Translations under genes and position numbers: made by a program
The notes under the pieces: model-generated
What the model saw: only the letters and a program-made list of their open reading frames with translations
Database searches by the model: none
What the model was told of the DNA's origin: nothing
Source of the DNA: Utricularia gibba
Lineage: Eukaryota; Plantae; Magnoliophyta
Reading direction: 5' to 3'
Assembly (NCBI GenBank): GCA_002189035.1
Contig: CM007989.1
Coordinates: forward strand, 620,001-684,000
DNA length: 64,000 nt
In this document: piece by piece, positions 3,047 through 31,835 of the stretch
Layout: each line of letters begins with the position of its first letter
How positions within the stretch are numbered: position 1 is the stretch's first letter

Positions 3047-3159
3047 TTAGGGTTTCTTTTTTTCCCCCTTTTTTCTGTGGATGGGTCAAGGCGAAGTTTC
3101 AATTAACAGAAGATAGTATTGGGCTTAAATGGGCCGGCTCAATTATCCGTATAGGCCCA
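3047..3159. promoter_or_regulatory. Telo-box plus site II cluster in the divergent eIF2-alpha / APY7 promoter
   Basis: TTAGGGTTT at 3047-3055 (telo-box, reverse), TGGGCT at 3120, TGGGCC at 3130 and GGCCCA at 3154. This combination is typical of plant translation-machinery promoters. Confidence 0.65.
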
Positions 3160-22516: not shown

Positions 22517-23557
22517 ATGGCAACCAACCATTCTGATTCCTCCTCCGGCATTCTGGAGAATCCCATCGATAAGCTGACTGATATAGGCTCCAACATGCTT
22601 TATGTGCGTGTAGCTCGCAATGTGAGTCTTTTCTGCTTGCTACTGAGTTCTCTTGCTCTTTCATGCATATTTTATGGATACAACAGTTGCCTTCGAATGT
22701 CTTGTGTCTCTTTAAGTAAAACTGAAACTTGGTCACAGCAGCACCTGGCAGATGACTTCGATACTGTGAAACTGGTGGATCAGCTGGACAGAGATCTCAT
22801 CAGAAAAGAACAGGAAGCAGTCGACCTCTTGAAACAACTGAAAGCAACCAGGAAGATTGTTCAGGTGCTCAAAGCGGATAGTTCCATGGTTTCCGGATCC
22901 CTGCTACCAGAATTGATTCGAAACTGCAACAGAGCTTCACTTGCACTTACCCTGATCCGTGGACCAGTGGAATCCCTGAACAAAAACATGAGACAATGGG
23001 AACTTCATGAGAGGAGAATGAACTCCAACACATCATCCAAACCTGCTCTACTCTGGGATGTTGAAGAACAGCAGCTGCAAAGGATGAAGGATGCCACAAG
23101 ATACGAGTTCATGAAGGCAATGCGGGAGATGGAGATCACAAAAAACAGCATAATAATGGCAGAGATGCGGCTCAACGCAGCGAAGAGGATGGAAGAAGCC
23201 GTTAAAGCAGTTGAAGCTATTGCTGTAGCAGAAAGAAGGGGTTTCAGCAGTAAATCAGATGACCTTCTTTCCTGGAAATCCGATGCCCGGGTCGTCGACA
23301 AGAACGTGATCGAGCGACAAACCTCCGATGGAGACAAGACGATTCATATGCATCCCACCAAATTGAAGCACAGGAATCCGCCGAGACACCCGCCGCGTCG
23401 ACCGGCGATCTCCATCAGCGCGATTCTGAGCAGGAAGTTGACGACCCAATACGATCAAAAGTGTAGTGTTCATCAAAGCAACGGGCGAGGGGCTGTCGAG
23501 AAGCAGCAGGTGCCTCAAAAGAGGAACAAGACTACGGGCACCGTATTTAGGGAATAA
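22517..23557 (+). CDS. WEB-family (DUF827-like) coiled-coil protein, divergent
   Basis: Coiled-coil LDRDLIRKEQEAVDLLKQLKATRKIVQVLK and AEMRLNAAKRMEEAVKAVEAIAVAE resemble short WEB proteins. The N-terminal part is atypical and may contain a retained intron. Confidence 0.62.
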   Translation: MATNHSDSSSGILENPIDKLTDIGSNMLYVRVARNVSLFCLLLSSLALSCIFYGYNSCLRMSCVSLSKTETWSQQHLADDFDTVKLVDQLDRDLIRKEQEAVDLLKQLKATRKIVQVLKADSSMVSGSLLPELIRNCNRASLALTLIRGPVESLNKNMRQWELHERRMNSNTSSKPALLWDVEEQQLQRMKDATRYEFMKAMREMEITKNSIIMAEMRLNAAKRMEEAVKAVEAIAVAERRGFSSKSDDLLSWKSDARVVDKNVIERQTSDGDKTIHMHPTKLKHRNPPRHPPRRPAISISAILSRKLTTQYDQKCSVHQSNGRGAVEKQQVPQKRNKTTGTVFRE

Positions 23558-23780
23558 GTTACATGTGATAATTATTAATTAAATATTACGAAATTTGACG
23601 CTGCCTTGTCCATGTTATCTCCAATAAGAATTTATGGTTTTTTTTTTTTTTGAATTGATTCAATAATTTTTTAAAAAGTTATAAATATTATTAATATTGA
23701 GTTTTGTTTGCTCAATTTATATTATTAATATTAATTGTTATATATATATATATGTATATATTGCCTCTTATTTCCAAAAA

Positions 23781-23840
23781 TGGGCCCGAGGCGTGGCGTG
23801 AGGCCCATTAGTCTAAACCCTAACCCTTGTTCTCTATAAA
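23781..23840 (+). promoter_or_regulatory. RPL21 promoter: two site II elements, telo-box and TATA
   Basis: TGGGCC at 23781, AGGCCCA at 23801, AAACCCTAA at 23815-23823 and TATAAA at 23835-23840. Confidence 0.8.
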
Positions 23841-23887
23841 GTTGGCCATATAGGATTCTTCTCGATACGTAGGAAGAGTGCAACGGG

Positions 23888-25482
23888 ATGCCGGCGGGGC
23901 ACGGGCTTCGTTCACGGACGCGGGATCTTTTCGCCCGGCCGTTTAGGAAGAAGGGGCCGACGCACTTGTCGACGTATCTCCGAGTATACAAAATCGGAGA
24001 TTATGTTGATGTCAAAGTTAATGGATCCATCCACAAGGGGATGCCTCACAAGTTCTATCATGGCCGCACTGGCCGCGTTTGGAATGTAACGAAGCGTGCA
24101 ATCGGGGTCGAGGTCAACAAACAGGTCATAATTCGCTATTCTGAGTCCTTTCTTGGTACATTTTGATTTGATATGAAGTTCATATGTTTTTCCAGTATGG
24201 GGTTTCTACTTATAGTTGCCCTTGATTTTTGAAAAAGGCATGTAATGATTTTCTGTATGTTGCTTTTTCATACGTTGGTTTTGGTTTTTACTGGGTGTCG
24301 ATGATGACAAAATCAAGGCTTGTTTCTCAAAACATTCGCAGTGGCCGCCTGAGAGCTTTCGCCTTCGCCGGGCTCGAGAGCTTATGCTGCTTATTCCTTC
24401 CTTGGATGTCTGAGACTCTCTCATTGTTGTCATTTTTAAGTGAACTTGTTATGACTTTTATTCTGTATTGAGCATTTCAATTGTGTGAAGTCTTTTTCTA
24501 ATGATCATGCTCTTGGCTAGCATGTGGAGGATGTCCATGATGATAAAATCAAGGCTTGTTTCTCAAAACATTCGCAGTGGCCGCCTGAGAGCTTTCGCCT
24601 TCGCCGGGCTTGAGAGCTTGTGCTGCTTATTCCTTCCTTGGATGTCTGAGATTTTCATTGTTCCCATTTTTTGAGTAGCCTTTGTATGACCAATTTTTTA
24701 ATCAGCATCTCATTTGTTTGGGGTCTTTGTCTAATTATCATGCTGTTCGCTAGTATGTGAAAGATGTCTATGATGATAAAATCAAGGCTTGTTTCTCAAA
24801 ACATTCGCAGTGGCCGCCTGAGAGCTTTCGCCTTCGCCAGGCTTGAGAGCTTATGCTGCTTATTCCTTCCTTGGATGTCTGAGACACGCATGTTTTGCTC
24901 AGGATTGAAATTTGAAAATTTTAAAAAGATGTACCATCTCATCTATGCAGGGTTGAGATTGAACGTTTTCAGTTTTGTGGGTTTTTAGCTGCTGTCTCTA
25001 TGCATCTATGATGACAATCCTAAGGCTTGTTTCTCAAAACATTCGCAGTGGCCGCCTAAGAGCTTTCGCCTTCGCCAGGCTTGAGAGCTTGTGCTGCTTA
25101 TCCCATCCTTGGATGTCTGAGATGAAATAGTCTTCCCATTCCCAAATGTGCTGCTACATCTGTTGGGTTCCACTTTTGAGCATAGTTGAATTAACCCTGA
25201 TTCTTCTGTTCTCCATTGCAGGTTGGCAACAGAATCATCAGGAAGAGAATACATGTTCGTATCGAACATGTTCAACCATCTCGTTGCCACGAGGATTTCT
25301 TGCAGAGAGTGAGGAAAAACGACGAGCTGAAAGCGGAGGCAAAGGCGCAAGGTAAAATCATCAGCACCAAAAGGCAGCCAGAGGGACCGAAGCCTGGCTT
25401 CATGTTGTTGGAGGTCGCAACTCTTGAAACTGTAACACCAATTCCATATGATGTTGTGAATGATCTCAAGGGAGGATACTGA
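23888..25482 (+). CDS. RPL21: 60S ribosomal protein eL21; exons 23888-24124 and 25222-25482; 1097-nt intron hosts snoRNAs
   Basis: [19 protein letters not shown]...[21 protein letters not shown]...NKQ|[22 protein letters not shown]...[14 protein letters not shown]. Phase-0 GT-AG intron. Confidence 0.98.
24296..24418 (+). ncRNA. U14: U14 box C/D snoRNA, copy 1 (intronic in RPL21)
   Basis: Box C ATGATGA at 24301, domain A AACATTCGCAGT, plant Y-domain (GAGAGCTTTCGCC...GCTCGAGAGC), domain B CCTTCCTTGGATGT (complementary to 18S ACAUCCAAGGAAGG), box D CTGA at 24410, and a short terminal stem GTC/GAC. Confidence 0.95.
24532..24653 (+). ncRNA. U14: U14 box C/D snoRNA, copy 2
   Basis: Box C at 24538, domains A and B intact, box D CTGA at 24646. 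Confidence 0.95.
24764..24887 (+). ncRNA. U14: U14 box C/D snoRNA, copy 3
   Basis: Box C at 24770, domains A and B intact, box D CTGA at 24879, terminal stem TGTC/GACA. Confidence 0.95.
25002..25125 (+). ncRNA. U14: U14 box C/D snoRNA, copy 4 (most divergent)
   Basis: Box C at 25008, domain A intact, domain B variant CCATCCTTGGATGT, box D CTGA at 25117, terminal stem CATC/GATG. Confidence 0.93.
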
Positions 25483-25948
25483 GAGAGCAGGACACCCCTT
25501 TTCTCCCTTTCCAGGATATGGAATCACTTGGCGGAATTCTGCCTTTTTTTTTTTCATTTTTTAACCCAAAGCCGATATTTTTCAAATTTAATTGGCTTTT
25601 AATTCTAATAAGGTATAGAAGTTAGGTTAAAAATTCCGGAATCCCCAATTTCAATTTGGTGGCGTCTACGTCATTTTATTTCATCTAAACGACGTCGCAT
25701 TAGGCGTGCGATGAGTAATGGCTAGTCCCTGTCTGCCTCTGCCCCGAGCGAGTCAGTTTCATCTCTCAGAGGAAATTAGTTTTAGGCGATGCTGATACTT
25801 CATCGGTTTCAATTTCATTTTGTAATATTGACGTCTCTTTTCTTCATTTGATCGAGCGTTGATTTCTTCGCTGTCGCCTCCGGATTTGGGAAAGTTTGGG
25901 TTCTTCGATTTTTGTTTTTGTTTTATACTTGATCGTGAGAGCCGAAGG

Positions 25949-29894: not shown

Positions 29895-31835
29895 TCATGG
29901 GGTTTCAGCATTGGACACGTTATCCTCTGAGGAGGGCCGGTTCTCGTGCTCCGAGGGTCGAATATCCTCGATCAGGCGAACCACTTGAGCCATGGTTGGT
30001 CTGGTTTCAGGGGTTTTAGCTACGCAGGAAAGCCCGATCTGCAGCATCTGCACCATCTCCTCTTCGATGTAGTTCACCTTCAAGAGCTCTGCATCGAACA
30101 CCTCGGCCGTCCACTCCTCCCGGACCACGGACCGCACCCATTTCGGCAGATCGAAGCCGTCGCTGTGCCCGGTGGGAGACTTTCCGGTGAGCATCTCCAG
30201 CAAGAGCACTCCAAAGCTGTAGACATCAGACTTTTGGCTGATTTTCTTTGTTTCGATGACCTCTGGGGCTCTGTAGCCCGGAGCTCGAGGCTTTACTGGG
30301 ATGTAGTTCATCATACAGCTCAGGCCGAAATCGGAGACGCAGCCAACCAGGTCTCTGGTGAGGAGTATGTTGGAGGACTTGATGTTTCCATGGAAATACC
30401 TACCGCCACCTTCAGAATGGATGTGAGCAAGTCCTCTGGCAGCTCCAAGGGAAATGCTGAGCCTTGATTCCCAATCTAAAGCCCCTTCACTCCTTCTAGT
30501 TCCTGATCAAAAATGAACAAGGAGAATTATATCGAAAACAAGGAAAATTGAATGCCTCATGAATGATTCATACAATGCACAGCAGTACCATGTAAAGCAG
30601 AGTGCAAGCTTCCCACAGACATGTACTCGTAAACGAGAAGCTTCTCATCCTTGGAGAAATAGAAAGCAAGCAATGGAATAAGATTGGGGTGCCTCCCATG
30701 CTTGTTAATGATCTCCATTTGTTGTTCGAATTCCTTCTTTCCGATTTCCAAGTCCTTTAGTCGTTTAACAACGACTACGGTTGCTTCATCCAGAATGGCT
30801 TTGTAAGCTGTTCCATAGCTTCCTTTCCCTAGAACTTCAGCTGATGCCCTCAGCAAGTCCTCTAGATCAAAGCTAAGTGAGCATCCCTCAAAGAATACAA
30901 GCTTGTTCTTTTCAGCTCCTTGCACCCACTTCCAAAATCTTCAGACTTCAAGTTGTCAGTTTTGGTATCAGTTGCAGCCTTAGCTATAATCACAGTGGTT
31001 TCTGAACTACCCTTCGTTTTCAGGAACCAACAAACAAACGCCAATGCAAAAAGAATCGAAAGAGAAGCTCCACAGATTGCGATAGCAATGATGGCTCCTG
31101 AACTAAGCCTTGCTGATTTGGAACTTCCCTGAGTAGCTGGAGAACTAGGGGCAAGTGATGGGACGAGGCCTGAGCAAGTATCAAGAGGAGAGCCACATAA
31201 CTGTTGGTTTCCGATAAAAGAAGAAACAGGGAACTTCTGAAGGGATGCAGGAATTGGACCACTCAACAAGTTATGACTCAGGTTCAGAATTCCAAGTCTG
31301 GGAAGATTCAGATCAGGGATCATCCCGGACAAGAGGTTTCCTTGGAGGTTTAAGACAGACAATCTCTTCAAATTACTCAATGACAATGGAATGTCCCCAC
31401 TGAATGAGTTAAATGAGAGATTGATTATGTTCAGATGAGGGGAAAGAGACGATGGAATTCTACCTGAGAAATTGTTGTTTTGCAGGAAAATGGAATGAAG
31501 TGATGGAATTGAAAGTATTTCAGAAGGGAGCTCTCCACTTAAAAAGTTGGATCTCAAACTGAGAACTTGTAATGCATCAAGTTTAGCAATAGTATTCCCA
31601 GGGATGGGACCATAAAGTCCAACAGCAGGGAGATGAATCCCACAACTCTACTTCCATCCCTACTACAAGTAATCCCAATCCATGAACTACATACTGGACT
31701 TGTAGATTCCCAGTTGAGCTGTCGAGCATGCGGGACGTTTACCATGAAGCTGAGAAGTGCCGATGCATCAGAGTTGAGATCAGAGTGGCCATATGGTAAA
31801 ATGAACGCCACCAGCAGCAGCAGCAGAAGCTCCAT
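29895..31835 (-). CDS. LRR-III atypical receptor kinase (At5g58300-like), 2 exons; two apparent frameshifts (~31640, ~30926)
   Basis: Signal peptide, LRRNT ([18 protein letters not shown]), LRRs, TM, KLVFFEG...[33 protein letters not shown] (no HRD), GYRAPEV and [16 protein letters not shown]. Intron at 30588-30503. Confidence 0.92.

Follow-up and report, generated by a model that had tools for sequence, protein, structure and literature searches.

U14 (SNORD14), a box C/D small nucleolar RNA (snoRNA), is among the small number of snoRNAs on which 18S rRNA production itself depends, and the location of its genes decides how U14 supply ties to ribosome synthesis. The RNA takes part in 18S pre-rRNA processing by base pairing and directs one 2′-O-methylation in 18S (PMC7277114; PMC4660826). 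In vertebrates, three U14 copies reside in introns of hsc70 (Liu and Maxwell 1990, as reviewed in PMC7277114), while the classical plant U14 genes, those of maize and potato, form stand-alone polycistronic clusters (Leader et al. 1994, as cited in PMC8351944). Most hosts of plant intronic snoRNAs are ribosomal-protein or ribosome-biogenesis genes (PMC4660826), and PMC2875012 describes Arabidopsis introns that hold clusters of one and the same snoRNA, namely snoR155a/b/c in RPL23A intron 2, snoR110-2a/b in RPL34B intron 2, and snoR100a/b/c in At5g08180. Here, we analyze a 64-kb stretch of the Utricularia gibba genome, which we refer to as the window, and conclude that its segment 23888-25482 very probably is RPL21, the gene of the ribosomal protein eL21, with an intron-hosted array of four U14 genes. 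All four lie on the sense strand within one spliceosomal intron of the protein gene.

Results

Identity of the four U14 units

Scanning of the whole window with Rfam cmscan at curated thresholds returned four matches at or above threshold, every one of them to SNORD14 (RF00016, threshold 64 bits), on the + strand and across the full model (1-111). With E-values from 2e-19 to 3e-16 and scores of 81.9-93.2 bits, that is, 18-29 above threshold, the four copies are all significant under the covariance model that the initial annotation had named as a check; together with the intact motifs described below, these full-length matches bear out its reading of the units as U14. No other snoRNA or RNA family reached threshold in the 64 kb, from which rDNA is likewise absent, and a permissive Rfam rescan of 23500-25800 yielded nothing beyond the four SNORD14 copies (Table 1).

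Every copy carries box C (TGATGA) near its 5′ end and box D (CTGA) near its 3′ end, the latter immediately 3′ of domain B. An exact motif search spaced the four box C elements by 236, 233, and 238 nt; the box C sites listed initially are thus all real, each of them lying 0-1 nt off the exact motif position. Domain A (AACATTCGCAGT) is the same in the four copies and agrees with the invariant consensus block of SNORD14. Domain B reads CCTTCCTTGGATGT in copies 1-3 and CCATCCTTGGATGT in copy 4, where the 11 nt adjoining box D are unaltered. The terminal stem of 4 bp is complete in copies 3 (UGUC/GACA, intact) and 4; copies 1 and 2 each contain an outer pair that is non-standard. An internal, Y-domain-like hairpin between domains A and B appears in the Rfam alignment, in all four single-copy folds and also in the consensus of 11 plant U14s, there with one compensatory pair (AU to UA).

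The RPL21 host gene and its promoter

The two coding exons that flank the array join into an eL21 of 165 aa, which shares 85-90% identity over 100% of the query with plant 60S L21 proteins containing Pfam PF01157; its closest homologues come from the Lamiales (Forsythia, Phlomoides, and Orobanche), and the public protein collection holds no entry identical to the exact eL21 of the window. Contigs assembled from four RNA runs of three studies (X1, X3, X5, and X6) contain a joint that removes exactly 24125-25221 (GT..AG; contig joint 24121/25219, cut +3), and the RPL21 intron is therefore real and spliced. Reading frame, PF01157-bearing homologues, and this GT..AG joint thus agree with the host proposed from the letters of the window, RPL21 with a single intron. 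The position of the intron, after codon 79, is the same in all plant RPL21 genes sampled (tblastn exon maps, 18 loci). Transcript contigs start at ~23867-23895, a position that fits the TATA box at 23835 and excludes an additional leader intron in RPL21, and they end at ~25499-25553, the promoter and the region downstream of RPL21 being free of RNA-contig coverage.

The U14 copies had also been put forward as the explanation of the length of the intron. The array indeed occupies 829 of its 1097 nt, but the RPL21 introns of relatives measure 0.8-2.7 kb with one U14 or none, and the copies account for the intron length in part only.

A motif scan confirmed the telo-box/site II promoter named in the initial annotation, with all telo-box, site II, and TATA motifs upstream of the host gene and none inside the intron. 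The combination of telo-box and site II has been described for both plant ribosomal-protein genes and snoRNA clusters (PMC4660826). By anatomy, that is, a common sense strand and no internal promoter motifs, host and array make up one transcription unit, and the positions of the motifs suggest that the host promoter drives the array. Alternatively, the U14 genes could be an independent cluster merely placed inside the intron, with a promoter of its own and with U14 output uncoupled from RPL21 transcription. Stand-alone polycistronic units are the usual plant arrangement (PMC4660826), U14 is so arranged in Solanum commersonii (locus L014), and RNA-contig coverage, present over the array, is missing from the first 170 nt of the intron. 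However, exonucleolytic trimming would likewise leave the 5′ flank uncovered, and the lack of the three promoter motifs in the intron speaks against an independent start. Besides, U14 occurs in this intron in five other genera, at varying distance from exon 1 and between unrelated flanks, which is hard to square with a conserved internal promoter. We consider an independent cluster very improbable and favor transcription of the array from the RPL21 promoter.

Table 1. Coordinates of the RPL21-U14 locus in the window and U14 content of the RPL21 introns of other plants.
Feature or species	Position or locus	Strand	Description
RPL21 promoter	23781-23840	+	Site II at 23781 (TGGGCC) and 23802 (GGCCCA); telo-box AAACCCTA at 23815; TATA box at 23835 (motif scan)
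eL21 (RPL21) coding exon 1	23888-24124	+	79 codons from ATG; translation, homologues, spliced RNA contigs
RPL21 intron	24125-25221	+	1097 nt, GT..AG, 41% G+C, sole coding-region intron
U14 copy 1	24296-24417	+	SNORD14 85.3 bits; box C 24302, domain A 24331, domain B 24396, box D 24410
Spacer 1	24418-24531	+	45% U, 34% G+C; 73% identical to spacer 2
U14 copy 2	24532-24653	+	SNORD14 83.2 bits; box C 24538, domain A 24567, domain B 24632
Spacer 2	24654-24764	+	Duplicated together with spacer 1
U14 copy 3	24765-24886	+	SNORD14 93.2 bits (best); box C 24771, domain A 24800, domain B 24865
Spacer 3	24887-25002	+	Unrelated in sequence to spacers 1 and 2 (~50% identity)
U14 copy 4	25003-25124	+	SNORD14 81.9 bits; box C 25009, domain A 25038, domain B 25103
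eL21 coding exon 2	25222-25482	+	86 residues and stop codon; translation, spliced RNA contigs
Erythranthe tilingii (Phrymaceae)	L011		One U14 in RPL21 intron, 80 bits
Sesamum radiatum (Pedaliaceae)	L012		One U14 in RPL21 intron, 80.7 bits
Rehmannia glutinosa (Orobanchaceae)	L013		One U14 in RPL21 intron, 82.5 bits
Rehmannia glutinosa, second paralogue	P0007		U14 present, translated as false exon
Primulina tabacum (Gesneriaceae)	L016		One U14 in RPL21 intron, 65.6 bits
Orobanche minor (Orobanchaceae)	L009, L010		Decayed U14 relic, 31 bits, below threshold
Phlomoides (Lamiaceae)	L001, L002		No U14; H/ACA snoRNA snoR111 in RPL21 intron
Forsythia, Olea (Oleaceae)	L008, L017, L018		No U14 in RPL21 intron
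Cinchona (Gentianales)	L015		No U14 in RPL21 intron
Solanum	L004-L007		No U14 in RPL21 intron
Raphanus	L003		No U14 in RPL21 intron

Some further features of the host gene were recorded. At 25399-25425, in exon 2, the eL21 of the window has one extra residue and two substitutions where every other sampled plant eL21 reads GFMVEGATLE; RNA contigs agree with the genomic sequence over this stretch, which is therefore expressed as written. One RNA contig of run X6, in which the 25 letters ahead of 23867 do not match and 23965 shows a C>T change, may derive from a second RPL21 allele or a paralogue whose leader differs. Minus-strand pieces resembling a protein kinase at ~30160-30840 are collinear with a kinase gene just downstream of a U14-less Solanum RPL21 (L004 4921-6095). 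A tblastx comparison of the window with this Solanum locus for common neighbours uncovered only this possible collinear protein kinase, perhaps a remnant of conserved gene order but too weak to call synteny.

Duplication and constraint within the array

Tandem Repeats Finder reported a period of 233 nt, with 2.5 copies and 88% matches, over 24296-24885. Copies 1-3 are mutually 96% identical (5 differences per pair over 122 positions), and copy 4 is the most diverged, with 88-90% identity to the other three. Spacers 1 and 2 are 73% alike, as opposed to ~50% in all other pairs of spacers or flanks, which indicates that the unit duplicated was a U14 plus its downstream spacer. Both the tandem duplication inside the intron and the likeness of the spacers preceding copies 2 and 3, as first noticed in the initial annotation, are thereby upheld. 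Copies 1-3 are either the youngest or have been kept alike by gene conversion. The spacers contain 34-36% G+C and 40-45% U, and folding of the three of them revealed no convincing conserved hairpin as a possible cleavage signal.

Tandem repeats of ~235 nt can be mis-assembled, and one RNA contig joins 24414 to 25017 and thereby skips 602 nt, so that the fourfold repeat might be an artefact of a mis-expanded or mis-collapsed assembly. Nonetheless, the skipping joint has only 22 nt on one side and falls within repeated U14 sequence, a pattern typical of graph artefacts. Private substitutions distinguish every copy, and the sequence of spacer 3 and of both flanks is unique. Indeed, independent RNA contigs match copy 1-spacer 1-copy 2 (24387-24566, runs X1 and X3) and copy 2-spacer 2-copy 3 (24622-24799, two runs) with zero mismatches. 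An assembly artefact is hardly credible in view of these data, and we treat the four copies as genuine.

The comparison of copies 1 and 2 further evidenced unequal divergence along the repeat unit. Their U14 parts differ at 5/122 positions, whereas the co-duplicated spacers differ at 31/115 aligned columns (Fisher p = 9e-7), rendering the U14 parts ~seven times less diverged, a difference that points to purifying selection or gene conversion on the U14 part. All 16 variable sites among the four copies fall outside domain A, and only two, both in copy 4, lie in or beside domain B.

Transcript evidence and other U14 loci

The contigs that bridge neighboring copies resemble partly processed polycistronic intermediates, and as such are supportive, not decisive. 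A 100-nt RNA contig without mismatch lies inside copy 1 (24315-24414), and the U14 bins show higher RNA depth than the spacer bins; as signs of accumulation of a stable U14 of ~120 nt, these two observations are suggestive only.

The same RNA runs also contain U14 sequences that depart from the window. A 688-nt contig present in three runs has only the last 35 nt of U14 (24385-24419) in common with it and then continues into unrelated sequence. A second loose end occurs at 24650, and the contigs at the loose ends 24419 and 24650 run on for 232-255 nt as unrelated sequence. In addition, a variant U14 contig aligned at 24551-24619 carries C>A at 24584, G>A at 24587, and a T inserted after 24599, with a depth (37-85) equal to or above that of the local copies. 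These loose ends and variant contigs indicate that U. gibba probably has further expressed U14 loci.

Several points weigh against reading the locus as a productive U14 array. First, the further loci make it likely that the array is not the sole U14 source. Second, the RNA runs were analyzed in the form of assembled contigs, in which depth adds up look-alike loci and does not measure expression, and the kind of these runs is flagged ‘RNA?’, a class of libraries in which DNA may be present. Mature RNAs of ~120 nt from this locus are a prediction from sequence. Third, the minimum-free-energy z-scores of the four copies and three spacers are not significant (−0.86 to +0.46) and add no support, as is usual for box C/D RNAs. 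Finally, copy 4 is changed at array positions 100 and 103, both close to the 5′, box-D-distal end of domain B.

It is conceivable that part or all of the array consists of non-functional duplicates on their way to decay, with the U14 of the cell supplied from other loci. The altered domain B of copy 4 and the seeming expression of other U14 loci in this organism would fit this alternative, and the same intron of Orobanche minor provides a precedent in its 31-bit relic, in which box C, domain A, and box D are all mutated. However, the scores of all four copies here lie well above threshold with every box intact, their U14 parts have diverged far less than the spacers duplicated with them, and the variable sites spare domain A entirely and, apart from the pair in copy 4, domain B. 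Decay is therefore improbable in our judgment, and an array of four intact U14 genes in RPL21 remains the preferred reading. A more far-reaching possibility is that in the core Lamiales U14 moved from an ancestral stand-alone cluster into the RPL21 intron and has stayed there, and that in this compact genome the array of four has become the main or only productive U14 source. We regard this as unlikely; if true, the supply of a 40S maturation factor would hang on transcription of a 60S protein gene and compete with its splicing.

RPL21 introns of other plants

The initial annotation had called for a survey of RPL21 introns in the Lamiales and other eudicots. Plant RPL21 genes were fetched by exact-protein look-up, which provided mostly one paralogue per species. 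This survey revealed U14 in the same intron of four core-Lamiales species and a relic in Orobanche, whereas the sampled genes of Forsythia, Olea, Phlomoides, Cinchona, Solanum, and Raphanus have none (Table 1). The relic of O. minor, a holoparasite (L009 3193-3297; L010 ~3077-3157), has box C TGATAA, domain A CATTCTCAG, and box D ATGA. Comparison between species leaves the U14 segment as the sole alignable part of the intron, with 85-94% identity, and intron alignment with relatives therefore did not reveal which of the four copies is the positional orthologue. U14 ends 97 nt before the 3′ splice site in the window (copy 4) and ~270-650 nt before it in relatives, a variability that argues against vertebrate-style position-dependent coupling to splicing.

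A maximum-likelihood tree of 12 RPL21 coding sequences contained no resolved clade of U14-bearing paralogues; only Forsythia plus Olea was well supported, and the window grouped with Orobanche at 92/91, below the support mark. Since orthologues and paralogues are not separable in this tree, U14 may have been lost from sampled or other RPL21 paralogues. On the simplest reading, the RPL21 intron acquired one U14 around or after the separation from Oleaceae and ahead of the diversification of the core Lamiales. Together, these data indicate that hosting by RPL21 is common to relatives and that the fourfold amplification is local to the lineage of this genome.

The surveyed loci hold some other observations of interest. 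The 2.7-kb RPL21 intron of Phlomoides rotata contains snoR111 (78.5 bits; L001 4847-4972, L002 4839-4964), so that in this other lineage the intron is home to a snoRNA of a different kind. The Cinchona calisaya RPL21 model spans two copies of exon 2 (L015 3640-3897 and 6459-6720), either a local duplication or a merged model. Public annotations of the genomes of relatives miss or mis-translate the U14s of the RPL21 intron. Thus, two RPL21 models of Rehmannia glutinosa (P0008 and P0007; L013 2953-3075) include ~40 residues at the intron position that are translated U14, the false exon ending at a GT inside GGATGTCTGA. Over-long RPL21 gene models were also tried as markers of U14-bearing introns and rejected, as this held for the two Rehmannia models only, other insertions being unrelated sequence.

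In Solanum commersonii, an intergenic cluster (L014 5161-7517) between a NAM gene and a MADS-box gene has the order snoZ221/R21b, U14 relic (43 bits), U14, snoR99, U14, U14, and U14 relic (42 bits). Six public ‘hypothetical proteins’ match a U14 query (P0121-P0126; S. commersonii, S. lycopersicum, Bauhinia variegata, Hibiscus cannabinus, H. sabdariffa, and Arachis hypogaea). P0121, P0122, and P0124 are largely translated U14, with several repeats each, and P0123 has translated U14 at its N-terminus; judging from these translations, P0121-P0124 are spurious gene models over U14 clusters.

Discussion

The anatomy of the locus suggests the following route of expression. RNA polymerase II would start at the telo-box/site II/TATA promoter of RPL21 and transcribe exons and array as one precursor, from which the intron would be spliced out to give eL21 mRNA, the splicing itself being seen in the RNA contigs. 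Endonucleolytic cuts in the U-rich spacers would free the four U14 units, either from the intron or from unspliced precursor, and exonucleases would then trim each unit up to the box C/D protein complex. Internal cuts are needed because end-trimming of a debranched lariat frees only one protected RNA. The early claim that the excised intron must be cut into four RNAs hence follows from the anatomy, and it agrees with the bridging contigs and with the published route of plant polycistronic snoRNAs, which combines endo- and exonucleolytic processing (PMC4660826; PMC5122169). By analogy with other members of the family, on which the roles assigned here rest, domain A of the mature RNA of ~120 nt would serve early 18S processing by pairing with 18S pre-rRNA, whereas domain B with box D would guide the single 2′-O-methylation in 18S. 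As to origin, an ancestral single U14 in the RPL21 intron of core Lamiales would have been amplified in tandem to four in this lineage.

The mechanism itself, with snoRNA clusters in ribosomal-protein introns under telo-box/site II control, is already established and holds little surprise for a specialist. What appears undescribed is the hosting of U14 by the RPL21 intron of core Lamiales. Full-text literature searches that combined U14 with either RPL21 or ribosomal protein L21 returned no plant paper, only animal or medical papers with unrelated mentions. The view in the initial annotation that RPL21 is not known as a U14 host agrees with these searches, but RPL21 hosting is not special to this genome. 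Liang et al. reportedly described intronic snoRNA gene clusters of rice in Nucleic Acids Research in 2002. The host association is common to at least five genera of core Lamiales, and represents a dated, natural case of a change in the expression mode of a snoRNA, with one copy, four copies, or a decayed relic by lineage. In practical terms, it draws attention to RPL21 gene models and to several ‘hypothetical proteins’ that in fact are U14.

Compared with known systems, the locus is closest to those of its core-Lamiales relatives Primulina, Erythranthe, Sesamum, and Rehmannia, with which it shares the RPL21 intron after codon 79, the strand, and the U14 sequence at the identity given above; it differs from them in having four tandem copies instead of one per intron, and in flanks that cannot be aligned. 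The Arabidopsis clusters listed above (PMC2875012) are likewise tandem copies of one snoRNA in one intron of a ribosomal-protein gene, expressed with their host, but they consist of H/ACA pseudouridylation guides or orphans, whereas the snoRNA in RPL21 is the box C/D processing snoRNA U14. The stand-alone U14 clusters resemble the array in that closely linked U14 genes, ~110-130 nt apart, form one precursor that needs cuts between units; those clusters, however, are intergenic, with their own promoter and with mixed snoRNAs (snoZ221/R21b and snoR99 at L014), while the array of the window has U14 only and lies in a spliced intron. In Xenopus and trout, U14 is also found in introns of RPS13. Vertebrate hsc70, finally, has in common with RPL21 that U14 is intron-encoded in a housekeeping protein gene with several copies per gene. 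There, each intron holds one copy, which is released by trimming of the excised intron, and the host encodes a chaperone; here, the host encodes a ribosomal protein, and four copies in one intron make internal cuts a requirement.

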